The translations under genes were made by a program, and so were the position numbers. Shown in pieces: positions 10,629 to 63,392 of a DNA stretch of 64,000 nucleotides. The notes under the pieces are model-generated. The model was not told the DNA's origin and searched no databases. It saw only the letters and a list, made by a program, of their open reading frames with translations. The stretch lies in the IMG/VR virus record IMGVR_UViG_3300028920_000022, positions 372,001-436,000 of that record. One strand, written 5' to 3'. How positions within the stretch are numbered: position 1 is the stretch's first letter; each line of letters begins with the position of its first letter.

Positions 10629-12098
10629 ATGCCCGCAAAAGTTCAAAAAACTCCTTTGCTTAAGGAAGGCGAATATACCATAGCCGATGTTTCAGATTGG
10701 AACTTTTTTGATCTTTCAGGCGAAAACGCCCACACTTTTGGCACGTCCAACAAACAATATCACATAGAAATGCACATAGGTAAAAATGGTAAGTGTCAGA
10801 TCTTTACCATGTTTGGTCCAACCGGGGGTACCCAAACTAAAAATTGGCGCTACTTTGACTCTGAAGTTGCCGCCCGTAAAGAATTGGCGTCAATGAAGAA
10901 AAAAAGAGTCAAAAAGAATTATAAAGAAATTAAAGTTGCCATTCGTGCTTACGGTACCGAAGAGGCTAAAAAGATCACTCAAGCTGTTGAGTTCAACAAC
11001 TCAGATATAAAACCCTCCAGCAATCTCCATAAAGAAACCCAACGATTAATGCGGGTTCTCTTTGGTGCAACCGAACACTTCGTTGTTACCACTTTGCGCT
11101 GCCCTCTGGGTCAATTAACCAATGAACAAGTAGATGAGGGTTATAAACGCCTAAATGAAGCAAAAAAATTAATTTCTAATGGTTCACCAAATGCTAAACG
11201 GATTGAAACACTTACCAACGAATTTTATGCTATTATCCCCCACAATTTAGGAGCCGGTGCGAGAGGTAAAATGATGAACCTCTTGCTGGATACTCCACAA
11301 AAGATTGCTCAAAAAGAATATGATTTAGAAACATTATTGGACGCCAAATCGGTTGGAGCTGCCCTGGAAAAGGGCTCAACCGTTGATGATCAATATAATG
11401 AATTGAATACCGATTTTGATTTTATTGATCATAACGATCCTTTATTTCAATGGGTAAATAGGATTGTTTTGGATACTCGGGCACACAACCATAATACTTT
11501 GGGTAAGATTACAGTATTGAATGCTTGGAAATATAATCGTCATGGCGAGAGAAACGTTTTTGAAAAGAGGATGAAAGAGATTGCCAAGGAGTGTAAAAAG
11601 CCGTTTACGCCTAAAGTTTTGAGGAATGCTGTTGAAAATCGGTTAGATATTCCAGATGGACAGGGAGGATTATATAAAAAGGCTAATGTGTTGCCATTAT
11701 TTCATGGAACCCGGACTCAGAACATTGCTGGAATTACGAAGAAGGGATTGTTGATAAGACCTTCGGGTGTGATTTTAGAAGGTTCATGCTACGGTAGTGG
11801 TGTTTATTATGCAAACAACAGTAGCAAAACGATCAACTATAGTAGTGTTCGGGGGGCTTATTATACCCACGGCAAAGACGATCGTGGTTATATATTCATA
11901 GTAGATTGCGTTCTAGGCGACACTTATGTTCCAACTACTGCAGCAAACTACACCAAGGGTAATATTTCCCCCAACCATTCAGTGTGGGCAAAGGGAGGAT
12001 ACTCTGGCGTAATTAATGATGAGTATGTGTTGTTGGACATAAATCAGCATAATATTAGATACTTAGTGGAGTTTACTTGCGGGAAAAATGGAATATAG
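10629..12098 (+). CDS. Poly(ADP-ribose) polymerase-like protein 1 (WGR + regulatory + catalytic domains)
   Basis: WGR-like N-terminus, CPLGQL, FYAIIPH regulatory domain, catalytic FHGT / YGSGVYYA / NDEYV (H-Y-E). Confidence 0.9.
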   Translation: MPAKVQKTPLLKEGEYTIADVSDWNFFDLSGENAHTFGTSNKQYHIEMHIGKNGKCQIFTMFGPTGGTQTKNWRYFDSEVAARKELASMKKKRVKKNYKEIKVAIRAYGTEEAKKITQAVEFNNSDIKPSSNLHKETQRLMRVLFGATEHFVVTTLRCPLGQLTNEQVDEGYKRLNEAKKLISNGSPNAKRIETLTNEFYAIIPHNLGAGARGKMMNLLLDTPQKIAQKEYDLETLLDAKSVGAALEKGSTVDDQYNELNTDFDFIDHNDPLFQWVNRIVLDTRAHNHNTLGKITVLNAWKYNRHGERNVFEKRMKEIAKECKKPFTPKVLRNAVENRLDIPDGQGGLYKKANVLPLFHGTRTQNIAGITKKGLLIRPSGVILEGSCYGSGVYYANNSSKTINYSSVRGAYYTHGKDDRGYIFIVDCVLGDTYVPTTAANYTKGNISPNHSVWAKGGYSGVINDEYVLLDINQHNIRYLVEFTCGKNGI

Positions 12099-13651
12099 AA
12101 AAAGTTAGAAAGCTTGTGGAAAAGCGTGGTGGAAAACTTTTAACGACCGAATATATTAATCAACACAAAAAGCTAGATGTTATTTGTGAAAAGGGACATT
12201 TATGGCACCCATCTGGAGAAGCATTACGAAAGGATCGTTGGTGTTCTTTTTGTCGTGGTAGCAGAATTAGCAAATCCAAAATAGATCCCAACAAAATATA
12301 CAAAATAAAGCAGGTAGCTAAGGAACGGGGAGGCGAATGTCTGTCGGATATTTATGTCAGTGCGTTGGCAAAATTAAAATTCAAGTGTAAAAATGGTCAC
12401 ATCTGGGAATCTAATTATAAATCTGTTTATAATAGAGGGTCTTGGTGTCCAATATGTTGTTTTAACCCCTCAATTTATCCCCAAAAGGGGGAAACATTTG
12501 TTCAGGCGTCACTAAAGCATGCAGCAAATATAGCCAAGAAAAGGGGTGGAAAATGTTTATCGATGGATGCTAAGACGTTGGGAAAATTAAGGTGGCGATG
12601 CGATCAGGGGCATGAGTGGAAAGCCACATATGCCAATGTTATTAATGGATCTTGGTGTCCCACATGTAAAATAACAATTTCCGAATACATTTGTAAGGGA
12701 TATTTGGAACACTTGTTTGGCGCTAAATTTTTAAAAATGAGACCACGATGGTTAAAAAACCCACACGGTGGATTATTAGAGTTGGATGGTTATTGTGAGG
12801 AGCTAGGTGTTGCCTTTGAGCATAACGGTAGGCAACATTATCATCAAGCGTGGTTTCAAACAGAATACGAATTTACCTCTCTTCAAAAACGCGATAAAGT
12901 AAAAAAAGAATTATGCGAACAAAACGGGGTTAAATTAATTATTATTCCAGCCATTGCTTATATGACTGAAATTGAGGATTTGCCCAAAGTAATAAAGGAA
13001 GAGTTTGTCAGGTTAAATATTAATAACATAAAAACATTTCCGCCGGTAAAAGAAGCAATAGACATTGATCAATATTATATGGTAAATTGGGATGATTATT
13101 TTGAGAAAATAAAGTCTATTATGGAATCGCATGGATGGGAGTGTTTATCCAAGGAATATAGGGGCGGTTTATATAAGTTAAAAATAAAATGCAATAAAGG
13201 ACATGTTTTTGACGAGTTTCCATGCAATATCAAAAAGTGGAAAGGGTGTCTAGAGTGTAAAAAAGAGAGAAACAGAGAGTCCATGCTTGTCAAAGCTTAC
13301 GCATTAGCAAAGAATCGGGGCGGAGAATGTTTATCTTCTGAATACAAAAACAACCATTCAAAGATGTTGTGGAAATGTAGTTGTGGCAATATTTGGGAAG
13401 CCAGTTACAATTGTATTCAGCGAGGAACGTGGTGTCCTCCATGTTCTATTATAAGGCGGGCAAACAAAAAACGACTGGGTATAGATGTTTATCAAAAAGC
13501 GGCGAAGAAAAAGGGAGGAAAATGTCTTTCCAAGGAAGTAAGTAGTTGTTTTGACGAGATAGAATTCGAGTGTGGGCAAGGACATAGATGGTTTGCGCGA
13601 GCGGATCAAGTGAAAAATACGGACAGCTGGTGTCCGAAATGCAACTACTAA
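12077..13651 (+). CDS. Zn-ribbon-repeat PD-(D/E)xK endonuclease (homing-endonuclease-like)
   Basis: Repeated C..GH.W....WCP.C units around LELDGYCEELGVAFEHNGRQHY. Confidence 0.75.
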   Translation: MREKWNIEKVRKLVEKRGGKLLTTEYINQHKKLDVICEKGHLWHPSGEALRKDRWCSFCRGSRISKSKIDPNKIYKIKQVAKERGGECLSDIYVSALAKLKFKCKNGHIWESNYKSVYNRGSWCPICCFNPSIYPQKGETFVQASLKHAANIAKKRGGKCLSMDAKTLGKLRWRCDQGHEWKATYANVINGSWCPTCKITISEYICKGYLEHLFGAKFLKMRPRWLKNPHGGLLELDGYCEELGVAFEHNGRQHYHQAWFQTEYEFTSLQKRDKVKKELCEQNGVKLIIIPAIAYMTEIEDLPKVIKEEFVRLNINNIKTFPPVKEAIDIDQYYMVNWDDYFEKIKSIMESHGWECLSKEYRGGLYKLKIKCNKGHVFDEFPCNIKKWKGCLECKKERNRESMLVKAYALAKNRGGECLSSEYKNNHSKMLWKCSCGNIWEASYNCIQRGTWCPPCSIIRRANKKRLGIDVYQKAAKKKGGKCLSKEVSSCFDEIEFECGQGHRWFARADQVKNTDSWCPKCNY

Positions 13652-16826: not shown

Positions 16827-16899
16827 AATAATTCGTGCTTGCTTGTCGAGCGCAAGTAACCGTTGGAAGTATTGCTTGGCAGTTTTCGAAGGATAAAAC

Positions 16900-17904
16900 A
16901 TGGACGTAATACCAGGATATACGTTTGACGATGTTCTTTTAATTCCTAAAAAATCTAATATAGAAAGCCGAGAAGATATCGATCTTTCGGTAAAATTTAG
17001 AAAAGGAATAGAGCTTAAGATTCCTATTATTTCCGCCAACATGAAAAATGTTACCGGACCTAAAATGGCACAAAAGATTGCCAAGCTTGGCGGGATGGCT
17101 ATACTGCATAGGTTTGTAGATGGCTTATATGATTTTGTAAAACAATATACCGATTCTTTGGTTATGCCAGAAGATGTTAATCATATTGGTGTTTCGGTTG
17201 GTATCCATGATTATGACAAGAAGTTGGTTGAACATGCCGTTGGGGCAGGGTGCAAAATAATTTGTGTAGACGTTGCACATGGACATCATGATAATTGTTT
17301 GAGAATGTGTGAGTATATTGCGGGTAACTTTCCTGATGTTTTGTTAATTGCCGGCAACATTTCTACTGCGGAGGGTGCATTAGATTTAGTCAATGTTGGA
17401 GCAGATGTAATTAAGGGTGGAGTCGGATCCGGATCGTTATGTTCTACACGTATTGAAACAGGAAATGGAGTTCCACAACTAACAGCTTTGGACAATATAT
17501 ATCAAGTTTTAAAAAATACCGATGTTGTGATTGTCTCAGATGGGGGTGTCAAAGTTGCCGGAGATCTAACTAAATGTTTAGTGTTTTCTCATGCTGTAAT
17601 GTTGGGTAATCTTCTAGCAGGAACCGATGAAGCTCCTGGTGAAATTATTCAAGTTGATGGCTTGGAATTTAAACAATATGCCGGAAGTTCTACTCATAAA
17701 TCAAAACACATTGAAGGTGTAATTGGATTAGTTCCTTATCGAGGTCCAGTAGAAAAAGTAATTACTAAACTAATGGAAGGTCTCCAAAGTGGTTGTTCTT
17801 ATCAAGGAGCAAAAAATTTAATTGAACTTAGAAAAGATCCAAAATTTGTTTCTATTTCTAATGCTGGTTTGATAGAAAGTAAACCACACGACGTAAGATA
17901 TTAA
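16900..17904 (+). CDS. IMP dehydrogenase / GMP reductase family protein (no CBS domains)
   Basis: TFDDVLLIP, DVAHGH, GVGSGSLCSTR catalytic Cys, SDGG. Confidence 0.9.
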   Translation: MDVIPGYTFDDVLLIPKKSNIESREDIDLSVKFRKGIELKIPIISANMKNVTGPKMAQKIAKLGGMAILHRFVDGLYDFVKQYTDSLVMPEDVNHIGVSVGIHDYDKKLVEHAVGAGCKIICVDVAHGHHDNCLRMCEYIAGNFPDVLLIAGNISTAEGALDLVNVGADVIKGGVGSGSLCSTRIETGNGVPQLTALDNIYQVLKNTDVVIVSDGGVKVAGDLTKCLVFSHAVMLGNLLAGTDEAPGEIIQVDGLEFKQYAGSSTHKSKHIEGVIGLVPYRGPVEKVITKLMEGLQSGCSYQGAKNLIELRKDPKFVSISNAGLIESKPHDVRY

Positions 17905-17914
17905 AGAGGATGAC

Positions 17915-18397: not shown

Positions 18398-18398
18398 A

Positions 18399-19033: not shown

Positions 19034-19067
19034 GTCGAGTATCGTTGGTTCATTTTATCTAATATGA

Positions 19068-19655
19068 ATGATTCATTATTATATAATTGACGTAGAAACG
19101 AATGGTCTAAAAGCTGGATATCATGAGGTAACACAGATTTCGATCATACGTTGTTCAGACAGAAACCAACTAAATAGATACATCAAACCTGAACATCCCA
19201 ATCGTACAACGCCAAAAGCATTAGAAGTGACGGGTAGAACTTACGCCGATCTTTCTAAAGGGGATGATAAAGAAACGGTTGTGGAGTTTTGTGATGCTTT
19301 TTTTCAAGAGGATTCAGCTACTCCAGAAGAACGATGTATTGTGGGGCATAATATCCACCGTTTTGATAAGAAGTTTTTGCATGCTTTGTGGAAATCGGTT
19401 GGTAAGAAATTTCCTGCCAATTTGTGGTTAGACACATTACCTTCCACCAAAAAGTTTGCTACCAACCAGGGAATATATTCGGAGAATTTTAAGTTAGATT
19501 CTTGTTTGAAAGTGTTTGGTGTCAAGCCCAGACCTGGCGGACACAATGCTGTGGTGGATACTCAAAACACGTATATTTTGCTCAAGAGATTAGAAAAGAG
19601 CGGAATAGACCTACTTCCGTTTACCCAAAGATCTGTACATATGGTCGATGCCTGA
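19068..19655 (+). CDS. DEDDh 3'-5' exonuclease, second paralog
   Basis: DVETNG, HNIHRFD, HNAVVD. Confidence 0.85.
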   Translation: MIHYYIIDVETNGLKAGYHEVTQISIIRCSDRNQLNRYIKPEHPNRTTPKALEVTGRTYADLSKGDDKETVVEFCDAFFQEDSATPEERCIVGHNIHRFDKKFLHALWKSVGKKFPANLWLDTLPSTKKFATNQGIYSENFKLDSCLKVFGVKPRPGGHNAVVDTQNTYILLKRLEKSGIDLLPFTQRSVHMVDA

Positions 19656-19875
19656 GGAAATCATGGGAAGCATAACTAAAAAAATACGCAAGAAGGCTGA
19701 AAAATATCAAAAAGCCCTAGAAATTGTTGAGAGCAGTTTAGATAACATAGAGATGCCTGAAAGTTTTGAAACGTATGATTTGGCTGATTCTGTTAAATCA
19801 GAAATTGAAAAAGCCAAAATCGATCGTCGTCAAGCAAGAAACAGGCGAAAGGCGGTGAAGCGTGGTCGTAGATAG
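19648..19875 (+). CDS. Small basic hypothetical protein
   Basis: Overlapping coupled ORF. Confidence 0.5.
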
Positions 19876-20410
19876 AACAAAGGGAGTTACTTTGTGGTTG
19901 ACCGGGTTATCTGGCGCAGGTAAAACTACTGTTGCCCAAGCGCTAGAAACTCGCTTGATTAATTATGATATCAATTGCTATCGGCTGGATGGTGACGAAC
20001 TACGTACAGGGCTGTGTTCTGGGCTGGGTTTTAGTAAAGAAGATCGCTCAGAAAATATAAGAAGAGTTGCGGAGGTTTCTAAATTATTCGCAAATGCAGG
20101 TTTAGTTTCTATAGTAAGTTTAATCAGTCCATATATTGAAGACAGGGACAATTGTCGAAAAATTCATGAAAACGCAAATTTACCATTTGTTGAGGTTTAT
20201 GTTGATGCCCCATTAAATGTATGCGAAAGTAGAGATCCGAAAGGATTATATAAAAAAGCCAGAGCTGGAGAAATAAAAAAGTTCACCGGAGTAAGTGATC
20301 CATACGAGGGACCATTGAATCCTGAAATAATATTACGAACAGCTGAAAATTCAATTAATGACTGTGTAGAATTATGTTTGAAATATTTGCAAGAAAATCG
20401 CTTGACATAG
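19862..20410 (+). CDS. cysC: Adenylyl-sulfate kinase
   Basis: [43 protein letters not shown]. Confidence 0.95.
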
Positions 20411-20430: not shown

Positions 20431-20447
20431 GGCGCGGAGGAAAAAAA

Positions 20448-22064
20448 ATGACTACATCATCTGATTTTGTGAAAAGTTTAATTGGGGACCAGGAAAAGGC
20501 AGAGGTTTTAGAGCCTTACCTGAAAAAGAACGAAGATTGGCGGTTCAGTGTTGCTCGTGTAATGCTAACCGGAATTCTCAAGAACCAGTTTTACCGATCC
20601 GCAGAAGATGCAGCCAAAGAAGCGTTGCCATTAATGCTTATGGCTGCAAAGAAGGATCCCGAATTCCTATTAAAGGCTGCCGCTTTTGCACGTGAAGCTA
20701 ATATGAAGGGAATGGTCAAACTGGGTCTGGCAGCTTTAGCAACTCAGGCTCCAGCCCAATTTTTAAATGATAATCGGGCTACTATTGTTGGTTTGTTAGG
20801 AACTTTTCACCCAGGACAATTACTTCAATTTGTTGAACTAATGAAGTCAAAAGTTTTGGGCAGGGGTTTTGGTGCCCGCTCTCAGAAATGGGTACAGTCT
20901 GTAATGCAGTCTTGGCGCCCAGAAAAGGTAGAAGAATATACCCTAAAATATCCAACTGCATACAAGGTTCTTCTGCGTCTTGTTCACCCATCATATAGTG
21001 ATGTGCGAAGTGGGTTGGTTCGATATTTATTGGACCCCTCAGAAAAATACCCAGAATATGGCACACCAGCGGGCAAGATTCAAAAAGCGGTTGAGCGCAT
21101 CAAAACCTCTAACGATGATGCGTATATTGCCAAAACCATGTTGGAATATGAAATTCCTTGGGATGTTGTCAAAGGATTCCATTCTATTAATGGAGATGTT
21201 GGTTTAGCAATGTTAACCCAGATGGGGCTTTCTGCTTTACTGTTAAACACACGCAGTTTAGAGAAAAATGGTGTTTTAAACACCCCGGATGGAGTCCAAG
21301 CGTTTGCTCTAAAGTTAAATGAGGTTAAAAACGGCAGATCTATTCCCATTGATTTTGCCAAACCATATATTTATTCTGAGAACCATCAGGTCAAGGAGTT
21401 ATTAGTAAAGGCGATTGTTGACACCTTGGGCAAAGAAATGCCTCATATTGAGGGAAGAAGCATTGGTGTCAGCGTTGATATTTCTGGTTCGATGAGCAAC
21501 GAACCATTACAAACTGCTGGGCTGTTAGCAATTCCATTTTTGAAAGCACGCAATTTGTGGTTTACCACGTTTGATACGCAGTGCTATGAAGAAGGAACCC
21601 AGGTACGCGGTCGAAGTTGGTATGGCGCTTTATCTGAGGGAAAATATATTTGTCCACCACTGAAGGGTTTGGAGCCGGAACAGCAGGTAAAGAATCTGTT
21701 AAGTTTGCGGGTAAATGGTGGAACTAATGTTTCTTCGTCTTTGGACAGAGCGTTGCAAAACAATATTAATTTGGATTTGCATGTTCTAATTACCGATGAG
21801 CAGCAAAATGCCGGAACTCCGTTGATGAGTGTTTGGCGTGAATATAAGCGTCGAATTAATCCACGAGCCGAGTTGTGGATAATCAATGCTACAAACTATG
21901 TGTGGCATTCTGCGGATTTCGATGATCCGAGCGTTACCGTTTATCAGACCATGACGCCTGCAATTTTTAAGAATCTACGATTTTTTGGTCAGGATTTAGT
22001 TTCTGCTATTAAATCGTATGATTTGAATAAGGTTCGTAGGTTGGGTAAGTTTAAGCCGGATTGA
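20448..22064 (+). CDS. Ro60/Rsr-like TROVE + vWA RNA-binding protein
   Basis: QFY and DPEFLLKAAAFARE N-terminal TROVE pattern, LLRLVHP, PWD, ALLLNTR; vWA MIDAS VDISGSM, GGTN, ITDEQ. Confidence 0.85.
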   Translation: MTTSSDFVKSLIGDQEKAEVLEPYLKKNEDWRFSVARVMLTGILKNQFYRSAEDAAKEALPLMLMAAKKDPEFLLKAAAFAREANMKGMVKLGLAALATQAPAQFLNDNRATIVGLLGTFHPGQLLQFVELMKSKVLGRGFGARSQKWVQSVMQSWRPEKVEEYTLKYPTAYKVLLRLVHPSYSDVRSGLVRYLLDPSEKYPEYGTPAGKIQKAVERIKTSNDDAYIAKTMLEYEIPWDVVKGFHSINGDVGLAMLTQMGLSALLLNTRSLEKNGVLNTPDGVQAFALKLNEVKNGRSIPIDFAKPYIYSENHQVKELLVKAIVDTLGKEMPHIEGRSIGVSVDISGSMSNEPLQTAGLLAIPFLKARNLWFTTFDTQCYEEGTQVRGRSWYGALSEGKYICPPLKGLEPEQQVKNLLSLRVNGGTNVSSSLDRALQNNINLDLHVLITDEQQNAGTPLMSVWREYKRRINPRAELWIINATNYVWHSADFDDPSVTVYQTMTPAIFKNLRFFGQDLVSAIKSYDLNKVRRLGKFKPD

Positions 22065-24325: not shown

Positions 24326-24411
24326 TGCGGGAATGTAGCAAAGGCGGCTAGCCAGTCTCATAAGCTGGCGTCCATTGATCGCGAAGGGTTCGATTCCCTC
24401 TCCCGCAACCA
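24326..24411 (+). tRNA. tRNA with CAT anticodon (Met or Ile2), encoded CCA, long variable region
   Basis: TGCGGGA/TCCCGCA-A-CCA; CCAGT-CTCATAA-GCTGG; GGTTCGATTCC. Confidence 0.85.
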
Positions 24412-24468: not shown

Positions 24469-25875
24469 ATGGGAAAATTGAAGGTGTGGAAAGTTGGCGC
24501 AGCTGGAGAACCCAGTTTTCCTGCCAATTTTGAGGTGGCTAAAAAAGCCGTTCTCCAAGTTACAGATATTAAAACAAATCGTAATAAGTATTATGCCATA
24601 GAACTACACTCTGCTGGCAATAAATATAGAGTGTTTACTCATTATGGTCGAACAGATGATCTGGACACGAATCCTAATGCTGGGGTGCGCGAGGTTCGTT
24701 ACGGCAACTTGTCTGAATGTGAAGCAACCTATCATCAGATATATAGTCAAAAAACTAGCGCAAGAAAAGGATATAAGGAACTTAGCTTAGCATCTTCGCG
24801 TATTGGTTCGTCTCAATCGGTTGGTAAATCTAGCGGACATGTTGATGACAAAACGCTTGAAAAACTAAACAACGGTAACAAGAAAGTGATAAAAAACAAA
24901 GTTTCTACACTTTCTCCCGTTGTACAAGATTTTGTTTCTTATATTTATGCTGAAGCCACTAATGCCCTAACTAGCACAATTAATGCCAGCATTACCGCTA
25001 ATGGTATCGAAACGCCTCTTGGTGTTTTGACACTGGGTCAGATTGATAAGGGGCAAAAGATTTTGGATGAGCTTTATGATTTATTCAATTCAAAAAAGAG
25101 CCAATCAATACGTGACCATATGGTAGAACTGAGTGGTGAGTTTTATACAGTAATTCCTCACAGAATAGGCAGAACTAGGGCTGCTGTAGAAGCTGCTGTT
25201 ATTGATAGTTTAGTAGATTTTAATGCTAAGCAAGACACATTACAACTTATGCGAGACATGTTAAGTGTTTCGGGTAAAGACTCCCAGGTACTTATTAACC
25301 CTGAAATTGATAAGAAATATAATGCTTTGGGTTGCGAAATTAAAACTGTAGATAATAAAAAGTATCAAGAATTGAAGGATTATGTAGAGAAATCACAAAT
25401 AAAAACCAGAAATATTAAAGTAAAGAATATATATTCATTATGCAGACCAGAAGAACAAAAGGTTTTTGCTGATAATATTTCAAATAAACGATTACTTTTT
25501 CACGGTTCTAGGGCAAAAAACTGGGTAGGTATTCTTTCCCGTGGTTTGTTGCTTCCTAAGATTGTGGTTAGCTTGGGTGTAAACCGAACTGACGCAGGTT
25601 GGCTTGGAAATGGTATTTATTTCGGAGATGCTGTTTGCACTACATTATACTACACGTCTCCTGGAAGGCAGAGAAACACCCGGATGATGGCGATAGCGAA
25701 TGTAGCATTAGGAAAGATGAAGGATTTTAATAGAATTACGTATGGATTAAAAGGACCACCCGCTGGATATCATAGTTGTCATGGTGTACGTGGAACCTCA
25801 TTTGCAGATGATGAATATGTAATTTATGACCAGAAACAGCAGAAACTTGAGTATTTAGTGGAGTATGTGTCATGA
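24469..25875 (+). CDS. Poly(ADP-ribose) polymerase-like protein 2 (WGR + regulatory + catalytic domains)
   Basis: NRNKYY...YGR WGR domain, TPLGVL, FYTVIPH, LFHGSR / LGNGIYF / DDEYVIY. Confidence 0.92.
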   Translation: MGKLKVWKVGAAGEPSFPANFEVAKKAVLQVTDIKTNRNKYYAIELHSAGNKYRVFTHYGRTDDLDTNPNAGVREVRYGNLSECEATYHQIYSQKTSARKGYKELSLASSRIGSSQSVGKSSGHVDDKTLEKLNNGNKKVIKNKVSTLSPVVQDFVSYIYAEATNALTSTINASITANGIETPLGVLTLGQIDKGQKILDELYDLFNSKKSQSIRDHMVELSGEFYTVIPHRIGRTRAAVEAAVIDSLVDFNAKQDTLQLMRDMLSVSGKDSQVLINPEIDKKYNALGCEIKTVDNKKYQELKDYVEKSQIKTRNIKVKNIYSLCRPEEQKVFADNISNKRLLFHGSRAKNWVGILSRGLLLPKIVVSLGVNRTDAGWLGNGIYFGDAVCTTLYYTSPGRQRNTRMMAIANVALGKMKDFNRITYGLKGPPAGYHSCHGVRGTSFADDEYVIYDQKQQKLEYLVEYVS

Positions 25876-48907: not shown

Positions 48908-49588
48908 TCATAATTTTTTTTCGTTTTTTTCGGTAAAGCAACATCTTCCCGATGTGTCATAGTAATGCCAATATGGGGAATGAGAAGTAATCAAAGCAGC
49001 GCAACTTCTCGGTTCAGCCCAAAATCTAGAAGCCAAGCACCAACCTTCTTGCCCCTGGTTACACCGCACCCACTCTTCGGCATTTCCCATCATATCCCAA
49101 GCGCCACTTTGGGAAACGCAGGATTTACGATTACCAGCAGGTTCGCTTTGATCCAGGTATTCCATTTCTTTTTCATCGCGAATAAAGACTTTATATTCAT
49201 CAGCTCCGCGATATCTTTTATCATAATTGCACAAACCGGTATTATCGCCAGGAACGAATTTAGGCAATTCATCGCCGAAGGGATATTTTTTACCTTGAGG
49301 ACCTTCGCAGGCAGCGATCCATTCTTCTGCGGTACAGGGTCTTTTTCCTACGGATTTACAAAGTTCATCAATATTCATTATTTTATCGTCATCGTAAGGT
49401 TCTGGCAGGGCACTCAGACCTAGGAGAGGTTTATGACCTTTAATATTTGGCCATTCGTATTTATCTATACAGGCGGTTGGGGTAGCTGGGACCATACCTT
49501 CTGGGCAAGGATTTTTAGGAGTAAAAGTGCCACCTAAACTACTAAATAGTAAAACGGCGGTCAGAGTTGTGTAAGCAATTCGTTTCAT
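48908..49588 (-). CDS. Formylglycine-generating enzyme (FGE-sulfatase) domain secreted protein
   Basis: CPEGMV, CIDKYEWPN, GKRPCTAEEW, YPFG, DMMGNAEEW, GRCC. Confidence 0.8.
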   Translation of the reverse strand: MKRIAYTTLTAVLLFSSLGGTFTPKNPCPEGMVPATPTACIDKYEWPNIKGHKPLLGLSALPEPYDDDKIMNIDELCKSVGKRPCTAEEWIAACEGPQGKKYPFGDELPKFVPGDNTGLCNYDKRYRGADEYKVFIRDEKEMEYLDQSEPAGNRKSCVSQSGAWDMMGNAEEWVRCNQGQEGWCLASRFWAEPRSCAALITSHSPYWHYYDTSGRCCFTEKNEKKL

Positions 49589-53072: not shown

Positions 53073-53149
53073 GGTCCCCCAGATAGGATTCGAACCTATA
53101 TTATTCACAGATTAGAAATCTGGTGCCATGTCCATTAGGCGACTGGGGG
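53073..53149 (-). tRNA. tRNA-Arg(TCT)
   Basis: On -: CCCCCAG/CTGGGGG-A acceptor, CAGA-TTTCTAA-TCTG, ATAGG-TTCGAAT-CCTAT. Confidence 0.85.
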
Positions 53150-53656: not shown

Positions 53657-53657
53657 G

Positions 53658-55576: not shown

Positions 55577-55580
55577 TTAA

Positions 55581-56810
55581 CCTAATCAAAAAAGAAGTCC
55601 TCTACTTTTAAGTGGAGGATGAATTTTTTCTTCCGTATCTACGCATAATTATTCATATTTTTGAAGATATGTTGGTTTACAAATACAGACTCTATCCCAG
55701 TAAAAAGCAGCAAGAAAAACTGTGGATACATGCGAATAAATTGAATTGGATCTATAACCAGTTTCTAGATCAGAAAATTAACACATATAAGAATACAAAA
55801 AAGAATCTCTCCAGATACGATCTACAAGCGCAATTACCGAAACTTAAACAACGAGATCCAGTAATTAAAGAAATACATTCGCAAGTTTTGCAACAGGTGC
55901 CCAAGCGTTTAAACCAAGCATTTAAAGATTTTTACAAAAGAGGAAACAAAGGATTTCCAAACTTCAGATCTAGTTTGAACTTCTTCGGTATTTGTTATCC
56001 TCAGAGCGGATACTCTATATCAGGAAATGTCTTTAGAACGAAAATATACGGTAAAATGTCGTTTCTCAAATATCGCCCTATTCGTGGGAATATTCGACAA
56101 GTGTATATTACTAGTGAGAAAAATGGCTGGTTCATTTGTATAACAACTGACTATGAAAAAGATATTCCGAAAGCAACGGATAAGATCGGTATTGATGTAG
56201 GATTAAAGGATTTGGTTGTAACATCCGAAGGAAAACATATTAAAAACTGTAGTCATGCGAAATATTTTGACAAACAGATAGCGAAGATATCGTCAAGAAT
56301 AGATAAGAAAAAGAATAAGAAATCCAGATCTCGAAAGTTTCTGTGTAAAGTTCGGCGCAGATTGTATGATGTGAAAAAACGTAAGATTAACGATTTTCAA
56401 CATAAAGTCTCGAAGAGACTTAGTTCCGAATGCGATACAATATTTGCTGAGAATTTGAGTGTAAAGAAGATGAGTGAAGGAGAATTGCGGAACTTAAACA
56501 AGAGCATTCGAAATGCCAAATTAGCTAATTTCATTTCGTATCTATCATACAAGACCAACACATTGGTGTTGGTCAATCCGAAGAACACAAGCAAGACATG
56601 TAATCATTGTGGGAATATTCGAGAGAATTTGAAGTTATCCGAGAGGACGATTACATGTGACAAATGTGGTGAAGTATATGATAGGGACGAAAATGCCGCT
56701 AAGAACGTTTATTGCCTGGGACAGGCTATTCAGGATCTACAGTTAGAACCTGAGTATGCTGAATTATTTACGATTCAGGAAGCTCTTGCCTTAAGGCAAG
56801 AGTAGTTCAC
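55581..56810 (+). mobile_element. Non-autonomous IS200/IS605-family element (tnpB only)
   Basis: Left hairpin GTCCTCTACTT/AAGTGGAGGAT; right hairpin GCTCTTGCC/GGCAAGAGT followed by AGTTCAC; no tnpA. Left boundary is 55581 or 55587. Confidence 0.8.
55669..56805 (+). CDS. tnpB: RNA-guided endonuclease TnpB
   Basis: YKYRLYP HTH, IGIDVG (RuvC-I), FAENL (II), CNHC/CDKC Zn finger, DRDENAAKN (III). Confidence 0.92.
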   Translation: MLVYKYRLYPSKKQQEKLWIHANKLNWIYNQFLDQKINTYKNTKKNLSRYDLQAQLPKLKQRDPVIKEIHSQVLQQVPKRLNQAFKDFYKRGNKGFPNFRSSLNFFGICYPQSGYSISGNVFRTKIYGKMSFLKYRPIRGNIRQVYITSEKNGWFICITTDYEKDIPKATDKIGIDVGLKDLVVTSEGKHIKNCSHAKYFDKQIAKISSRIDKKKNKKSRSRKFLCKVRRRLYDVKKRKINDFQHKVSKRLSSECDTIFAENLSVKKMSEGELRNLNKSIRNAKLANFISYLSYKTNTLVLVNPKNTSKTCNHCGNIRENLKLSERTITCDKCGEVYDRDENAAKNVYCLGQAIQDLQLEPEYAELFTIQEALALRQE

Positions 56811-57160: not shown

Positions 57161-57162
57161 TT

Positions 57163-58212
57163 TTATACCTCAAACAACGGACATGTTCTACAAGAAAACG
57201 AATTGCTTTCCCTGGTTTTTAATAAACTATTACGGAATGCAACCATTCTTTCGTGGTTCCACACATCTTCAATAAATGAATTGCAGGAGACTACGTCCAT
57301 TCCCCGCGCCCACTCTACACAACCCTCGGCAAAAGAGCAAGGAAAAGCTTCACCCTTCCAGTTGATAAATATGGAAAACAATGAACTCTCGCAAGGCTCC
57401 ACATACTCAGCTATCTTGTCAAAATCTTTATGGTTTTTAATTGTGTTCAAGAATTTGAAAGCGGAACAACTATCGAAACCAAGCCCAACATTATTTGAAG
57501 TAGCTTGGTAAACCAAGTAAGCAAACTTGTTTTGTGACAGTTTGTGATAATGTTTCCCTCGCCCCTTTTGCTTTAAAGATAGCATAACAATAGCTTTTAC
57601 AGGATCCAAACGAGAATCTTTTACCTTGTCTCTAATGGTTTCCCGAGTAAGATTAAATGTTTCCTCACTGATCATACAATGAATGTTAATTTGTTGCAAC
57701 CCATGTTTGTGCAATTTTTGAATAGAATCGTAGCAAATATTTTTATTTTCGTAACGGCTGACAGCAACAGCCCCACAAACTTCTGCTAGTTTTGCTGCAG
57801 TTTCGTCTGAAATATCGGCAACGGTGATGTTTGGTATAACCCCATTGTTTCGACAATACCACATCATATCGAAAAGTTCGGGGTTTGATGTGGCATTACT
57901 ATCCGCACCAAAAGCAATTTGCGTTAGTATTCGGTTTTCTGTAATTTTGTCGAAAACTTTTTTAAAGGTATCCAGGGACATGTTGTTGCCAACCGGAGTA
58001 TTAGATTTGTAGCAATGTTTACAAACCTTTCCACCTACACCTTTACATATGGTGGTTACTTCGATGTCAGCAATCTCGGGAGACGGCGACATCTCCGGGT
58101 CTTCTTTTTTAGAGCTGCCCCAACGAATAAAATATCCAGAACCTTTATGGAACCGGTAATTATAATTAGGAGAGCGAACTGTTTTATGGTGTTTGCTTTC
58201 AGTAATTTTCAT
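57163..58212 (-). CDS. Radical SAM protein with SPASM/Twitch domain
   Basis: CKGVGGKVCKHC (CX7CX2C), PNIT, C-terminal PCES...PCSF...CRTCP. Confidence 0.85.
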   Translation of the reverse strand: MKITESKHHKTVRSPNYNYRFHKGSGYFIRWGSSKKEDPEMSPSPEIADIEVTTICKGVGGKVCKHCYKSNTPVGNNMSLDTFKKVFDKITENRILTQIAFGADSNATSNPELFDMMWYCRNNGVIPNITVADISDETAAKLAEVCGAVAVSRYENKNICYDSIQKLHKHGLQQINIHCMISEETFNLTRETIRDKVKDSRLDPVKAIVMLSLKQKGRGKHYHKLSQNKFAYLVYQATSNNVGLGFDSCSAFKFLNTIKNHKDFDKIAEYVEPCESSLFSIFINWKGEAFPCSFAEGCVEWARGMDVVSCNSFIEDVWNHERMVAFRNSLLKTRESNSFSCRTCPLFEV

Positions 58213-61200
58213 CCATTGCGTACCCTTCGGAGATATTGCGCCAAGTTTTCATTAGGTTTCGGCGCGTAATCTCCAAGGTACTCTAGCTTTTCTTCCATGT
58301 CAACACCAATAATTTTTCCAAAATTTTCCAGCTCTTTCTTTGCGTTTCCCCACAAAGCATTCTTATTTTTGAGGAACCAAACCAGCGCTATTTCTTCAAT
58401 ATTTTTACCATTAAATCTGGCATCCGGATTCAGAATATAGGTAGAAAAGAATATTTCCATAGCCTCAGCAAATTCGTTTTCTCGTTCTTGGTAAGCTATA
58501 TTGCGTGCCATTCCTTTTGGAATATTGGCAACCATTTCTTTATATTCTTCTGGCAATTGGTATACATTTTTTGCAATCAGTCGTAAAGCGGTTCCTATAG
58601 GCATCCATTTTGTTTTATCTTGTTCGAAAAGTCCGCTCATTTCTGCTGGGTTAATTTGTCCTATTTCTTTTCCTTGCAGCTGAATTCCCTTAATATTTTT
58701 GATATTAATTGGTCTGTGAACAACGCCCTGATTTTCTCCCAAATCGTTCATTTCGCCTTTTTCGTTATGTCTGGTGTCGTCTGGGTCAATCTCTATCCAA
58801 TTGAGCGGAATTGCCATTTCCAGTACCACTGGATCTCCGCCATCTTCTTTCGCGGTGTGATTAGCATAGAGCCAGGCGCCTGTAAAGCCTTCCAGCTGAC
58901 GGGTGACGTAGATACCTGGGCTTACTGATTCCCAATTAACGTAATTTTCGGCAATAGAGGGGTCCAGGGAGCCATGTTGAACAATAAGTGCCAATTTCTT
59001 AGACGAGGTACCGTGGTAAACAATTACCTTGTGTTTTCCAGCAGCCTCTCTAAATTCGGGATCGTGTAAACTTCGGACTCTACCCAGCTCTAGTGGCAAA
59101 GCCCTCTTAGAAAAAGCCAGGGACTGTTTCAATAAATTATGTCGTATAAATGCCTTTATTGTTGTATCAGTTTCTTTTTTCAACATTTCTTTAAGGTTAT
59201 TATTATCAAGCTTTGTGGCAATTTTAATTCTTTCTTTTTTGTCTTTTTTAGATATTAATTTAACCAAAGGGTCTTTGGTGTCATTGGTATCTTCCTCGTC
59301 TTCATCTTCTCCGCAGCCACATTCTTCACAATGTTCAGTTTCGCATGGGCAATCTTCACAATGACATCCACAGTTTAGACAATCATCGAAGCCACATCCA
59401 CAATTTGGACATTCTTCAGTTTCGCAAGTGCAGTCTTCACAATGGCAGCCACAATTTTCACAGTTATCATAGCCACATCCACAATCTGGACACTGTTCTG
59501 TTTCGCAAGTACAATCTGGACAATGACATCCACAGTTAGGACATGGGTCTAATCCACAACCACACTCTTCACATTGCTCTTCATCGCAATTACAATCCTC
59601 ACAATGACATCCACAATTTTCACAGTTATCAAACCCACATCCACAATTTGGACATTCTTCAGTCTCGCAAGTGCAGTCTTCACAGTCACACTCGCAATGT
59701 GGACAAATGGCTTCAGGTTTTATTCTCATACGAACGGCTCTAAACTTAGCATAAAGCTTGGCATATTCATTGCCTACCATCTTGTCTTTTATGATATTTA
59801 ATACTGAATATTGAGCTTTATGGTTTAGAATTTCATTACCCAGCATTTTACGTAGATATTGGTAATCAATTCTTTTTGCAACAGCTCCGCGAACATCTAC
59901 TGAAGGATCATCCATGAGTAATGTTAAATATTTTTTATCTACTCTTTGGGCCACAGCATAACGCACCAGTTGGGTATCCCATATGGGGCTATCAATGAGA
60001 AGGTGTAAACTTTTCTCTGGCAAGCGTTGAGCCAGCTTTCCTAAAGCATCCAAGTTTTTAATATTTTTTGTCAAGATTTGTGGGAGATATTTTTCCAGCA
60101 GCTCGGGTTTTGTTTTCATAAACAACTGCCCCATTGCCATATATTCAATTGGTCCCAAGTCTTGCCTATTCAATAATTCTTCAAATACATTAGAAGTATC
60201 TTTCATTTTATGTAATGCAGCAGACACTGTGTCTAAATTATCACTTTTGACCATTGCTTCCAAATCTGATTCGTCAGCAACCTGTTGAACAAAAAGCTGT
60301 TGCACTCTAAAATTATTGTCATGCATCATAAAAGACTTAAGTACTTTATGATATTTTTTAGCTATATTTTTGTCGTAAACCAGTTTACTATATGCTGATA
60401 AACGTACATTTTCATCTTCCGATCTCACAAAATGGAAAGCTTCAAGTATTGGTAGGCGATTAATGGCTGCTTGTTGTGCGTTTGGTGTTGTGTTTTTTAA
60501 TAAATCTATATGATCTTGCAGATCCTGGTAGTTCATTGACGTAGCTGCATAATATTGATTTGACGGATCGTCAGAAGACAGATGTTCAACTCGCCTCATA
60601 CGCTCTCGTAACACCTCTAATACTCGTGGGTTTTTTTCCGTCTTCATCATTAAAGATATTTGGTTGTAAGGTATTCGTTGTGCTACGGAATCTCGTACAG
60701 TTTCGGACTGGTCTTTCACCATTAATATCAAACGATCTCTGGGTATTTTTTGTGCTACTATGTTGCGAACACCAACGCTGGGATCTTTCATCATTTCAGG
60801 TAGATATTTTTCATCTATAGTGTTAGCTATTTGAACTCGTATAGGCTCAAATTCATCATGAATAAATTTAGGCAAATATTTTTTATCCACTTGTTTGATG
60901 GCAGCGTATCTTGCGTTATCATTAGTGCTTTCAAGTAGTCTTACCCAAGGAATTTTACTATATATAACCTGTGTTACAGCAAGATCTATATCTCCATTTT
61001 TGCGATCAAGAATTTTGTTTAAATACTCTTCAGAATATTCCTCATAACGATGGTTATCTATATAAGCAACAACCACATCATCATCCGGGTCGTTTTTTAA
61101 TGTTGTTAGTTTTTCTTTCAACTCTTGTGTTTGAGCAGGAACGTTTTGTGCTATCCACATGCGGATTTTAGTGATTGGACTTGTGGATAGCTTTACTAAT

Positions 61201-63392
61201 ATATCTACGGTTTCTTCATTGTATCCATATACATTCGTAAGAGTTTTTAGGGCGTATATCCTGGTATCAACATTCATGTTTTCATCAGTGGATATTTGGT
61301 GTAGCTCTTCTTCTGAAGCATGAGAGAGAGCCTCTCCTTTAATATACAGATAACCTTCTGACAAACTATCATCGTGTAGTATTAATTTTAGAATTTCTGA
61401 ATCTATATCGCTACGCAACGCAATTGCTGCTTTTATTTTATCGGTACCATTTAGATACATTTCTTTAAGGTACTTTGCGTCTATTCTTTTTGCTACAATT
61501 CTTCGAACATCTTCATCTGGATGATCTTTGAAAGGAACCACCTTATCTTCTGGAACATATACCAAAGCCGTTAAAACCACAGAAACGCTTGGGTCATTAA
61601 GCAGTTTTACACATATTTCTGGAGGAGCCACACTTGCCAACTCTGCCCTTACACTTGGGTTTGGATCATTCAACATTCCTGCTAGAACTGCCACATCCCC
61701 GTTAGCAGCCAAAACTTTTACAGCTTCCTTGCGCACACGAGTGCTTTTCATAAATTTAGCTAATTGGTGAGGATATTTTCTTACAACATCACTTAAAAAC
61801 ACTTCAGATGAATAATTTTCTTCGTTAATATTTGTTTTATTATAAAGAGCCTCCATGTACGCTAGTATAGTGTTTTCATTGGCGTTTGCGTTCAAAAACT
61901 CTCTGAAGGGTATCAGGTTATAGGTGCGTGCAGCCGTCCACACTTCTTCCGGTACTGATTGTGATATTATTTTTTTACTTTGTTCTAATAGCGTATTTCT
62001 ATATGATTCATTTATATGTGGATTTTGGGCGGCAGCGATAACTACTGGATAATCTCTAATGTGTCGTTTTAAAACCCTATAAAACAAATCCCCATCATAT
62101 CGCTTGATAAGTTCGGCAAGAACAGATATACTGGAATCATTATACATGGTTTCGATAATGTCCATATCAGCTCGCTGTGCCACCTCTAGGCGTACTTTTT
62201 CCGATGGATCATCTACCAACAACCCCAGATCTCTGGATAAAAGACGTTTTGCTATAAATAACCGTTCAGCTGGAGTGGCTTCTTCTGTAATTAAATGAAT
62301 TAAATGTTCTTTTTTAGTTTTTTTATATTTACCTAAGTCTATAGGTCCAGTGGATTCTGTTAATAATTCTTTTAATTCATTTTCAACTTTATATACGGGT
62401 TTTTTTGTTTTAGGATTAATTCCTTCCCATTTTGGTTTTTCTCTATAAGGGTTTTTGATAATATCGATCACATCTATGGCATTTGTTCCAAAGTAGGCGC
62501 CCTGATAAGGTTCGTTGGTATGTATTGTTCCGGTTCCTGGATCATGTACCCCAGAATAGCCCAAACTGGTAAGAATACGTCTAAACAAAAACTTATTCTC
62601 AATATTCAATCCCAGCTTTCCAACCGAATTATGAACAAACCTTACAATATAAAATAATTGTGACGCAACCGTGGCTACATTTCTAGAACCTTCGCTTTTA
62701 TTATACAACTTGTCAACAATTTTATTTATTTGGTTGGGGACCTTAGAGGTATCATCTCCCAGATATTTTTGTTTTAATTGATGTAATTCGTTTTGAAGTT
62801 TGTATTCTGATTGATTAGCTTTTACTAACTCCAAAGACGCTTGGGACATACCTTCTTTATCGTCTTTTTCTTCAAAACTTCTGTAACGTTCAGCAAAACC
62901 AGCCTTCTCTTCTTGTATTTTTTGTAATCTAATTTCTGCTTCTTCTATTTCTTTCTTTCGTTTTTGTTGAGTGCCTAAAACATAAGGCACAAGTATGTTT
63001 TTTATTTTTTCTACATCTCTTTCTAGATCGCCCTCGTTATACTTGCCAACGTCTAAAACAGTTTCGGGATTTCTGGCTTTAAATATAATAACACCAGGGC
63101 TATCAGCTTTAAAACGAATAATTTTTCTAGTACCATTAATAAAGTCTTCAACGGTTTTTTCTATAATAGGAAAACCATAAATTCCTACAGGAGTATCATA
63201 ATGAGATTGTAGATATAATCCCCAAATGAGTTTTTTATCTTGATTTCGGTTTGCCCAAGGATTTACGGTTTCAGAAAAATGCAAATAATGATAGGGTTTA
63301 ACATAATTCTTGATAATTCCCACCGCAGGAGGAATGTGGATATCCTCTTTTATATGCCTACGTTTCGCTTGTTTATAACTCATTTGTCCCAT
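58209..63392 (-). CDS. 1727-aa polyvalent protein: ART-like N-domain, HEAT/LRV repeats, Cys-rich repeats, C-terminal ART-like domain
   Basis: Repeated DPSxxVRxxVA; five 27-aa Cys repeats; VYHGTS...PGIYVT...YA..VVLE; N-terminal TPVGIY...LGYSGVHD.G.GTIH.NEP.Q. Confidence 0.7.
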   Translation of the reverse strand: MGQMSYKQAKRRHIKEDIHIPPAVGIIKNYVKPYHYLHFSETVNPWANRNQDKKLIWGLYLQSHYDTPVGIYGFPIIEKTVEDFINGTRKIIRFKADSPGVIIFKARNPETVLDVGKYNEGDLERDVEKIKNILVPYVLGTQQKRKKEIEEAEIRLQKIQEEKAGFAERYRSFEEKDDKEGMSQASLELVKANQSEYKLQNELHQLKQKYLGDDTSKVPNQINKIVDKLYNKSEGSRNVATVASQLFYIVRFVHNSVGKLGLNIENKFLFRRILTSLGYSGVHDPGTGTIHTNEPYQGAYFGTNAIDVIDIIKNPYREKPKWEGINPKTKKPVYKVENELKELLTESTGPIDLGKYKKTKKEHLIHLITEEATPAERLFIAKRLLSRDLGLLVDDPSEKVRLEVAQRADMDIIETMYNDSSISVLAELIKRYDGDLFYRVLKRHIRDYPVVIAAAQNPHINESYRNTLLEQSKKIISQSVPEEVWTAARTYNLIPFREFLNANANENTILAYMEALYNKTNINEENYSSEVFLSDVVRKYPHQLAKFMKSTRVRKEAVKVLAANGDVAVLAGMLNDPNPSVRAELASVAPPEICVKLLNDPSVSVVLTALVYVPEDKVVPFKDHPDEDVRRIVAKRIDAKYLKEMYLNGTDKIKAAIALRSDIDSEILKLILHDDSLSEGYLYIKGEALSHASEEELHQISTDENMNVDTRIYALKTLTNVYGYNEETVDILVKLSTSPITKIRMWIAQNVPAQTQELKEKLTTLKNDPDDDVVVAYIDNHRYEEYSEEYLNKILDRKNGDIDLAVTQVIYSKIPWVRLLESTNDNARYAAIKQVDKKYLPKFIHDEFEPIRVQIANTIDEKYLPEMMKDPSVGVRNIVAQKIPRDRLILMVKDQSETVRDSVAQRIPYNQISLMMKTEKNPRVLEVLRERMRRVEHLSSDDPSNQYYAATSMNYQDLQDHIDLLKNTTPNAQQAAINRLPILEAFHFVRSEDENVRLSAYSKLVYDKNIAKKYHKVLKSFMMHDNNFRVQQLFVQQVADESDLEAMVKSDNLDTVSAALHKMKDTSNVFEELLNRQDLGPIEYMAMGQLFMKTKPELLEKYLPQILTKNIKNLDALGKLAQRLPEKSLHLLIDSPIWDTQLVRYAVAQRVDKKYLTLLMDDPSVDVRGAVAKRIDYQYLRKMLGNEILNHKAQYSVLNIIKDKMVGNEYAKLYAKFRAVRMRIKPEAICPHCECDCEDCTCETEECPNCGCGFDNCENCGCHCEDCNCDEEQCEECGCGLDPCPNCGCHCPDCTCETEQCPDCGCGYDNCENCGCHCEDCTCETEECPNCGCGFDDCLNCGCHCEDCPCETEHCEECGCGEDEDEEDTNDTKDPLVKLISKKDKKERIKIATKLDNNNLKEMLKKETDTTIKAFIRHNLLKQSLAFSKRALPLELGRVRSLHDPEFREAAGKHKVIVYHGTSSKKLALIVQHGSLDPSIAENYVNWESVSPGIYVTRQLEGFTGAWLYANHTAKEDGGDPVVLEMAIPLNWIEIDPDDTRHNEKGEMNDLGENQGVVHRPINIKNIKGIQLQGKEIGQINPAEMSGLFEQDKTKWMPIGTALRLIAKNVYQLPEEYKEMVANIPKGMARNIAYQERENEFAEAMEIFFSTYILNPDARFNGKNIEEIALVWFLKNKNALWGNAKKELENFGKIIGVDMEEKLEYLGDYAPKPNENLAQYLRRVRNG
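59310..59705 (-). repeat. Five tandem ~81-bp repeats encoding CxxCxCxCxxCxC....CxxCGCG
   Basis: Seen in both DNA and protein; nine Cys per unit. Confidence 0.9.

Follow-up and report, generated by a model that had tools for sequence, protein, structure and literature searches.

The window analysed here is a stretch of 64,000 nucleotides, bases 372,001-436,000 of the 458,729-bp IMG/VR record IMGVR_UViG_3300028920_000022, a phage genome rated complete by CheckV, and the genes found within it and elsewhere in the same genome point to a megaphage module built around nicotinamide adenine dinucleotide (NAD+) and ADP-ribose, with predicted writers of ADP-ribosylation, predicted erasers and a nicotinate route that would supply the fuel. 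This reading, in which the erasers are taken, by inference from sequence, to be coupled to these particular writers, is given a rough probability of 0.55. An earlier note, made from the letters of the window, had proposed a phage toolkit for ADP-ribosylation, and the families that write, remove and fuel the modification are indeed all present, with intact catalytic motifs in the two PARPs, the ADP-ribosylglycohydrolase (ARH) and PncB; all seven of the open reading frames (ORFs) it named were found at the positions it gave. Its interpretation, that the phage runs a reversible circuit of its own and/or counters host defences, finds partial support. The writer/eraser/NAD-salvage module is real and partly conserved, and it is not a single locus. 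Its parts, with window positions first and genome positions for the three genes outside the window, are as follows.

10629-12098, plus strand: PARP-A, 489 residues, a (WGR-like)-HD-ART ADP-ribosyltransferase (ART) of a megaphage-specific clade (Pfam, PDB alignment, orthologs)
24469-25875, plus strand: PARP-B, 468 residues, a WGR-HD-ART protein of a conserved bacterial/megaphage family (Pfam, PDB match, homologs, tree)
28864-30006, plus strand: PncB, nicotinate phosphoribosyltransferase (NCBIfam equivalogs; Pfam NAPRTase, 6.9e-60)
31034-32050, plus strand: ARH, an ARH3/DraG-family ADP-ribosylglycohydrolase (PF03747, 3.9e-44, 151.9 bits against a 26.2-bit cutoff)
32213-32920, plus strand: NadE-fold protein (AlphaFold2 and Foldseek), always directly after ARH and in the same place in the independent NCBI contig L009
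32904-34898, plus strand: SF2 (ResIII/DEAD) helicase (Pfam), 72% identical in L009 and part of the conserved block
36323-36808, plus strand, start more likely near 36350: macro-domain homolog (family profile against PDB, Atlas lead, L009 ortholog)
58209-63392, minus strand: protein of 1727 residues, in which Pfam finds HEAT repeats only
58212-59165, minus strand: C-terminal module (residues 1410-1727) of this HEAT/Cys-rich protein, by its modelled fold a new ART-fold family, ART core at about residues 1450-1600
Genome 29,332-29,826: compact NadD-like adenylyltransferase (97 bits against a 112-bit cutoff; both signature motifs)
Genome 115,797-116,396: PncA nicotinamidase (equivalog, 278.7 bits against a 174-bit cutoff)
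Genome 457,566-458,093: canonical macro protein (PHROG 335, 4.2e-19; DarG macro, 6.5e-7; Poa1p, 8e-4)

The confirmation by profile and structure that the earlier note had called for gave a divided result: curated hidden Markov models (HMMs) confirm PARP-A, PARP-B, ARH and PncB, whereas the macro-like, NadE-like and ART calls come from profile or fold comparison only. In PARP-B the WGR domain (1e-8, 35.6 bits against a 22-bit cutoff), the regulatory domain PARP_reg (PF02877, 2.9e-17, 63.5 bits against 26.8) and the catalytic domain PARP (PF00644, 9.8e-31, 107.2 bits against 26.7) are all recognised, and the triad H345/Y384/E449 is unchanged in 18 homologs. PARP2 and PARP1 can be aligned with this protein over the stretch from WGR to catalytic domain, and its best match among solved structures is the catalytic domain of PARP4 (2.9e-45), which is a mono-transferase. 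PARP-A likewise holds PARP_reg (1.6e-16, 61.1 bits against the same 26.8-bit cutoff) and PARP (7.8e-19, 68.4 bits against 26.7) domains, a triad (H359/Y393/E465) that is invariant among its orthologs and a conserved insert of 45 residues ahead of the HG motif; its WGR score of 19.5 bits, however, lies under the 22-bit Pfam cutoff, and the W-G-R motif reads FGP where its orthologs have YGR. The claim of two PARPs with HD and ART domains thus stands, the WGR domain is clear in PARP-B and sub-threshold in PARP-A, and the catalytic motif is H-Y-E in both proteins, not the "H-Y/L-E" that had been read.

Both families are well populated. Members of the PARP-A clade, with 38-53% identity, are found on no fewer than 23 IMG/VR contigs, many of which measure 200-480 kb. 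For PARP-B, 922 homologs are found at E<=1e-10, the best 120 of which are 60-82% identical, some of the homologs lying on megaphage-sized contigs of 327-506 kb; a scan of IMG/VR with the single PARP-B sequence gave no match, and matches appeared only once an alignment was used as the query. Given that identity is held at 55-82% across phages and two bacterial phyla, PARP-B is taken to be under strong purifying selection. No defence-system model of PADLOC matches either phage PARP or ARH.

The two PARPs had been called paralogs. Duplication does not account for them: at 25% identity they fall into two clades, each with a history of its own. The accompanying claim that two PARPs in one phage are unusual is borne out, since any PARP at all is found in 16 of 50,697 GenBank phage records, one copy in each, and the 23 IMG/VR records of the PARP-A clade likewise have one each. 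Intact A-type and B-type genes about 11-14 kb apart occur only in the present genome (G000) and in the G002/G003 lineage; in a further relative, G004, the A-type gene is intact and the B-type gene, about 8 kb downstream, is a remnant in which residues 9-77 are joined to residues 415-465 (L016:10001-10353). In a quick tree the phage copies of PARP-B form one clade (Shimodaira-Hasegawa-like approximate likelihood ratio test, SH-aLRT, 85), separate from the main bacterial clade, with a long outgroup branch. The sole "bacterial" member of the phage clade is on L109, a 34.7-kb contig of a metagenome-assembled genome labelled Fimbriiglobus sp., where the gene has no Macro or retron neighbours; this contig is probably a phage fragment mis-binned into a bacterial assembly.

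The third candidate writer is the C-terminal module of the 1727-residue protein. No Pfam ART family matches it above threshold; its family gives sub-threshold matches to families of the ART clan only (PARP, Tpt1 and ART-PolyVal). The AlphaFold2 model of the C-terminal 318 residues (predicted local distance difference test, pLDDT, 89) finds almost nothing other than ARTs among its best fold matches (Tpt1/KptA, Arr, Rhs ARTs, DarT and PARPs), with a modest top Z of 7.4. The module also exists as stand-alone homologs of about 300 residues, in which the motifs YHGT[ST], G[IV][FY]VT and VLE are conserved, H51 is invariant, E116 is conserved in at least 90% and motif 2 holds a Tyr or often a Phe. 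With Tpt1/KptA, Arr, ART-PolyVal and DarT it would share the common ART core and the H...aromatic...E pattern, and its terminal position in a giant multidomain protein of the phage recalls polyvalent proteins; a helical C-terminal extension of 150 residues of its own and the frequent replacement of the motif-2 Tyr by Phe set it apart from known H-Y-E families. On the strength of this model it is regarded as a new ART-fold family. The family profile has no match among PDB sequences and none among 27 related viral records, a search that had no positive control. The "ART-like domains" claimed for this protein are hence reduced to one, C-terminal and identified by fold. A second ART domain in the N-terminal 345 residues was considered and rejected for want of a sequence signal, that region showing no similarity to the C-terminal ART family, to Pfam or to PDB.

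Three side observations concern the same protein and its family. Eight uncharacterised proteins of Bacillus phage G (Gp233, Gp610, Gp53, Gp251, Gp336, Gp532, Gp141 and Gp568) are among the best 16 BFVD structural matches to the module, which hints, at the level of models, at an expanded ART-like family in that phage. About eight Cys-rich repeats of the form CPxCGCG...CEDCTCETE occupy residues ~1255-1390 and may form a metal-binding array or serve as the substrate of a Cys cross-linking reaction. A radical-SAM SPASM protein (57163-58212, minus strand) overlaps the end of the gene.

Of the candidate erasers, ARH is supported by its sequence: beyond the Pfam score, the motifs GDALGAPFE, WTDDT and GGDCDTT are intact and align to those of ARH3 (alignments to MJ1187 and ARH3), and the ARH3-type catalytic Glu (the Glu41 equivalent) is kept with both metal-binding motifs, so that the call of an ARH/DraG hydrolase with intact catalytic and Mg motifs holds. 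The gene is single-copy in the phage genome. The macro-like call for ORF 36323 fared less evenly. The ORF has no match in Pfam (PF01661 included), PHROG or NCBIfam, and it is the profile of its 7-member family that matches macro structures over the full length (2fg1, 5.7e-12; 2afc, 7.8e-12; 5e3b, 3.6e-9; the first two are BT1257 and the third the SCO6735 macrodomain). Homology to macro domains is thereby supported, but the Gly-rich diphosphate loop, GCGLAGG in BT1257, is replaced in all seven members by a glycine-free NKL(P/D)xE(E/D)xW that is 3 residues shorter, and on this sequence evidence the protein is filed as a macro-fold homolog and not as a canonical ADP-ribose hydrolase. The canonical macro of the genome, described as Poa1p/TARG1-like, keeps an intact IGCGLAGGDW loop, with a Pfam Macro score of 16.4 bits that is below the cutoff; an hhalign comparison of the macro-like family with it detected no similarity. 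Three Nudix proteins are encoded elsewhere in the phage genome.

Nicotinamide is a by-product of every ART reaction, and a Preiss-Handler route that could recycle it is encoded on paper. PncA, whose catalytic motifs are intact, would convert nicotinamide to nicotinate. The PncB call is upheld by equivalog-level scores above cutoff (TIGR01514, 394.2 bits against 269.55; NF003704, 431 against 379), and the NadD-like protein carries the signature GGSFNPPHVGH...ISSTRIR, so that by sequence the steps from nicotinamide through nicotinate and nicotinate mononucleotide (NaMN) to nicotinate adenine dinucleotide (NaAD) would be covered. The last step, to NAD+, is doubtful and supported by fold only. ORF 32213 matches neither Pfam (PF02540) nor NCBIfam, and the profile of its family has no match among PDB sequences; the fold search alone worked. 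Its AlphaFold2 model, built from four homologs (pLDDT 79), retrieves only NH3-dependent NAD synthetases, which make up all of the top 50 PDB and top 30 Swiss-Prot matches in Foldseek (E 3.7e-7 in PDB to 4.5e-8 in Swiss-Prot, template modelling score 0.55-0.68). The PP-loop SGGxDS, however, is degenerate in the family (LYGDST, LHGTA or FCEDTT) and this segment is poorly modelled. The NadE-like call is therefore kept as a statement of fold, and the protein is not filed as NadE. The only PF02540-like match in the genome (108,556-109,278) is TilS, and no phosphoribosyl pyrophosphate (PRPP) synthetase is found in the phage genome (no Pribosyltran_N match). The degenerate macro-like and NadE-fold families nonetheless retain 40-73% identity and many invariant residues, and their members may be binders rather than enzymes.

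The genes of the block travel together in part. In L009 the order PARP-B, PncB, ARH, NadE-fold protein, helicase, thioredoxin, a 206-residue ORF, IF-1-like protein and macro-like protein is the same, at identities of 73% for PARP-B, 54% for PncB, 63% for ARH, 41% for the NadE-fold protein, 72% for the helicase and 59% for the macro-like protein. The PARP-A side shows a linkage of its own: in 8 relatives the PARP-A ortholog is followed, at a distance of 0.1-2 kb, by an ortholog of the canonical macro (38-44% identity), and in G007 a strong Macro gene lies 5.5 kb from the PARP. In the present genome, and in the two relatives whose PARP-A is closest, the place of the macro after PARP-A is taken by a 524-residue Zn-ribbon protein, discussed below. 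In at least 7 records of the PARP-A clade (G009, G010, G014, G015, G018, G019 and G021) ARH and a NAPRTase-family gene of 470-497 residues are found 12-21 kb from the PARP. Among bacterial orthologs of PARP-B, for which counts were made over 80 loci with enough flank, a Macro gene follows the PARP by 15-137 nt in 67 of 78, and a natural fusion of a PARP-B-type protein with Macro exists (P0093). This repeated adjacency of PARP and macro, in phages and bacteria alike, together with the fusion, argues for writer-eraser coupling.

Several observations weigh on the other side. The parts of the module are scattered: three genes lie outside the window, at genome positions of 29 kb (NadD), 116 kb (PncA) and 458 kb (canonical macro), and the gene for the giant ART-bearing protein is 22 kb from the block on the opposite strand, with lysis, translation and TnpB genes between the two. 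The 53-kb span is not one locus. The "macro" and "NadE" proteins inside the window are without canonical active-site loops. The closest PARP-B relative (L033, 80% identical) differs downstream, where the first 10 kb contain neither PncB nor ARH, and in another megaphage lineage Nudix, SpoU and amidohydrolase genes lie beside the PARP. ARH is found in 11 and NAPRTase in 9 of the 23 PARP-A-clade records, many of which are fragments, and these counts cover the PARP-A clade only. Furthermore, the ARH of these distant relatives shares 26-29% identity with the present one, and for PncB tblastn returned no match at E<=1e-5, so that neither is an ortholog of the gene found here; what recurs is the function, not the gene. 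Co-occurrence of the genes in relatives is thus seen in the L009 block, in the PARP-A/macro linkage and in the pairs of ARH and NAPRTase, and is otherwise partial.

Taken as a whole, the module would work as follows. The writers would be two WGR-HD-ART PARPs of different origin and the novel ART-fold domain on a giant HEAT-repeat protein. Nucleic-acid ends arising during infection would switch the PARPs on through their WGR/HD modules, and the PARPs would then modify host or phage proteins, or nucleic-acid ends, at the expense of NAD+ and with release of nicotinamide. The ARH3-like enzyme and the canonical Poa1p/TARG1-like macro would remove or trim the modification. PncA would turn nicotinamide into nicotinate, PncB nicotinate into NaMN, the NadD-like protein NaMN into NaAD, and the NadE-fold protein, if active, or else the NadE of the host, would complete the return to NAD+; this recycling might also cushion the phage against host defences that deplete NAD+. 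Enzyme activity, the mono or poly nature of the modification, the activating ligand, the targets and the action of the erasers on PARP products are things we infer only, from the proteins encoded.

It is considered less likely that ARH, the macros, the Nudix proteins and the salvage genes serve counter-defence only, acting on host weapons such as DarT-type toxins, ADP-ribose-derived signals and NADase effectors, and that the PARPs have a separate task, for example host takeover in the manner of T4 Alt/ModA/ModB. The macro, NADAR, Nudix and NAD synthesis genes of jumbo phages have been interpreted in this way (PMC7824862), NARP pathways defeat NAD-depleting defences, the canonical macro resembles the macros of DarG and Poa1p, and the salvage genes are dispersed in the genome. 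Against this stand two features of gene order: first, PARP and macro are tightly adjacent in the phage relatives (8) and bacterial loci (67 of 78) already described, and are fused in one protein. Second, PncB and ARH come directly after PARP-B in L009.

The bacterial relatives of PARP-B raise a further possibility. Orthologs 55-66% identical are present in the genomes of at least 118 bacterial species, mostly Myxococcota and Planctomycetota, and head a cassette in which PARP is followed by Macro, HEAT/WGR_XIII, SWIM_XIII and RT_XIII, the last a reverse transcriptase (RT) (L031:8001-16136; loci L068-L147). On the 8.26-Mb chromosome of Rubripirellula the PARP gene is followed by Macro and then by genes for a HEAT protein of 829 residues, a SWIM protein and an RT; ARH is next door. 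PADLOC identifies the HEAT, SWIM and RT genes as type XIII retron components (WGR_XIII/HEAT-ARM_XIII, 8.5e-92; SWIM_XIII, 4e-190; RT_XIII, 1e-166). Across the bacterial loci the HEAT/WGR gene is found in 46 of 70, SWIM in 40 of 60 and RT in 34 of 58. Bacterial PARP-B orthologs thus lie immediately upstream of type XIII retrons (Mx162/Mx65 type, PMC7736814), whereas the phage carries the PARP alone: no RT, SWIM or HEAT/WGR_XIII homolog was found in its genome (phmmer, E<0.01). A tentative proposal, held to be rather improbable in its entirety, is that the family of PARP-B supplies the leading gene of a PARP-Macro pair conserved alongside type XIII (Mx162-type) retrons in Myxococcota and Planctomycetota. 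The WGR-HD-ART enzyme would sense multicopy single-stranded DNA (msDNA) or nucleic-acid ends made by infection and serve as an effector that consumes NAD or ADP-ribosylates its targets, held in check by Macro; megaphages would have taken the PARP alone and joined it to a phage-specific PARP, erasers of their own and NAD recycling, either to disarm such systems or as an alarm for nucleic-acid damage.

A narrower account would have PARP-B shared with, or captured from, the PARP-Macro module found with type XIII retrons in bacteria, and put to use in conflicts with retrons or between phages, be it as a decoy, as an inhibitor or as a means of excluding superinfecting phages, and not within a self-contained signalling circuit. 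It would explain why the bacterial orthologs sit in these cassettes and why the phage copies form a separate clade without the other cassette genes. However, this is improbable for several reasons: adjacency to a retron is no proof of joint function, PARP and macro are not among the components in the type XIII definition of Mestre et al. 2020 (PMC7736814), PADLOC has no model that matches the PARP itself, and the tree that bears on the direction of transfer is a quick one, with an SH-aLRT of 85 and a long outgroup branch. Least probable is an accidental collection of accessory genes in a variable region, with the macro-like protein, the NadE-fold protein and a PARP-A of altered WGR in decay, as the mosaic neighbourhoods that differ between close relatives, the PARP-B remnant in G004, the two proteins with degenerate active-site loops and the presence of TnpB, tRNA, lysis and translation genes in the same region might suggest, since all ORFs are intact, the degenerate families are kept at 40-73% identity with their invariant residues, the catalytic triads are invariant and the linkage recurs in diverged genomes.

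The module reading preferred here can be set against systems already described. Phage PARPs were noted before by Perina et al. 2014 and Iyer et al. 2021 (PMC4245714; PMC7824862), in Cellulophaga phi4:1 and phi17:2, Xanthomonas XacN1 (BBA65562.1) and Xoo-sp13, Klebsiella FBKp34-like phages and Stenotrophomonas CM1 and RAS14; they are the same kind of stand-alone WGR-HD-ART gene in large phages, one copy each, and are 23-27% identical to either PARP here. In FBKp34 a "phosphatase" annotation of the PHROG-335 type, not confirmed as a macro, lies 2.4 kb upstream of the PARP. The WGR-HD-ART order and the H-Y-E triad are common to clade-1 PARPs (PARP1/2/3), PARP4 and the bacterial PARPs of Herpetosiphon and Clostridioides difficile CD160 (PMC4245714, PMC5966428), but the phage proteins lack zinc fingers, BRCT, vWA and any further accessory domain. 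The literature searched held no experimental or biochemical study of a phage PARP.

The combination of NAD+ synthesis with NAD+-consuming enzymes is likewise known, from the NAD+-centric conflict systems of jumbo phages (Iyer et al. 2021, PMC7824862) and from "NAD-jumbo phages" that combine pncB-nadD-nadE clusters with PARP1 (Microbiome 2024, PMC11662467); a Preiss-Handler gene set in a phage is already on record. The present genome differs from these in that salvage is dispersed and includes PncA, the PP-loop of the NadE relative is degenerate, ARH and macro are linked to PARPs and the source is marine sediment, not gut. Reconstitution of NAD+ by phages has been shown experimentally for NARP1, NARP2 and NARP3 (bioRxiv 10.1101/2024.02.11.579819; PMC13464706). 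The presumed purpose, rebuilding of NAD+ during infection, is the same; the present genome departs from NARP1 and NARP2, whose enzymes are Adps with Namat or Nampt with Nmnat, in the absence of a PRPP-synthetase-like Adps, in a NAPRTase equivalog instead of Nampt and in what would be a deamidated (nicotinate) route. In summary, the gene kit is a richer variant of a published concept, and what is new is the pair of PARPs from two clades, the linkage of PARP-A with macro, the ART-fold family, the conserved relatives of macro and NadE that lack the glycines and the PP-loop respectively, and the association of PARP-Macro with type XIII retrons.

The setting of these genes may be described briefly. 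The reads behind the record come from a marine-sediment metagenome, and the public runs listed for the phage are metagenomic DNA, none being on record as RNA. The window has a GC content of about 38%, its genes run on the plus strand to about 40 kb and on the minus strand beyond, and megablast of 22 kb of it (10000-32100) against GenBank phages gave no DNA-level match. Two neighbours of the PARPs are conserved with them.

12077-13651, plus strand: protein of 524 residues, some six Zn-ribbon repeats of the treble-clef type (DUF4379) flanking a central domain (Pfam DUF4379, 1.1e-9)
20448-22064, plus strand: Ro60/Rsr-like protein with TROVE and vWA domains (NCBIfam Rsr, 1.5e-10, residues 36-493)

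The first of these overlaps the end of PARP-A, and 44%-identical orthologs stand in the same place after PARP-A in L040 and L042; it has no informative PDB match and no PADLOC match, and its central part may hold a Vsr/DUF559-like motif. The second stands between an RNase_T exonuclease (19068-19655) and PARP-B, an order that is also found in the closest relatives L033 and L034, and Rfam found no Y RNA or other noncoding RNA near it. A PARP4-like catalytic domain beside a TROVE protein recalls vault components, a resemblance only. Directly upstream of PARP-B, ARAGORN places an unusually long tRNA-Met (CAT) of 86 nt (24326-24411, plus strand), a site that the Rfam tRNA model misses at gathering score and that has a weak tRNA-Sec-like score of 26.8 bits.

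Between PARP-A and PARP-B lie a run of small overlapping ORFs (14.1-16.8 kb, 2.6 kb without long ORFs), a GMP reductase/IMPDH-family enzyme (16900-17904, plus strand) and an APS kinase (19862-20410, plus strand, 4e-68); the PARP of phage XacN1 likewise has genes for a GMP reductase and a vWA protein in its vicinity. Translation-related genes comprise an IF-1/eIF-1A-like protein of 75 residues (36099-36326, plus strand), an RF-1 (GGQ) domain protein of 130 residues (40280-40672, plus strand) and a tRNA-Arg (TCT) (53073-53149, minus strand). An FGE-sulfatase-domain protein (48908-49588, minus strand) lies in the minus-strand part, within which a TnpB/IS605 OrfB gene with a Cas12f-like TNB domain (55612-56805), a mobile element in the phage genome, is on the opposite, plus strand.

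Two compact, intact and very different PARPs, encoded with likely erasers and with nicotinamide recycling on paper, lend themselves readily to reconstitution in vitro. What bacterial PARPs do has long been asked, and the strong link seen in genomes between type XIII retrons and the bacterial PARP family that is conserved best opens both that question and the identity of the effector of Mx162-type retrons to direct test.

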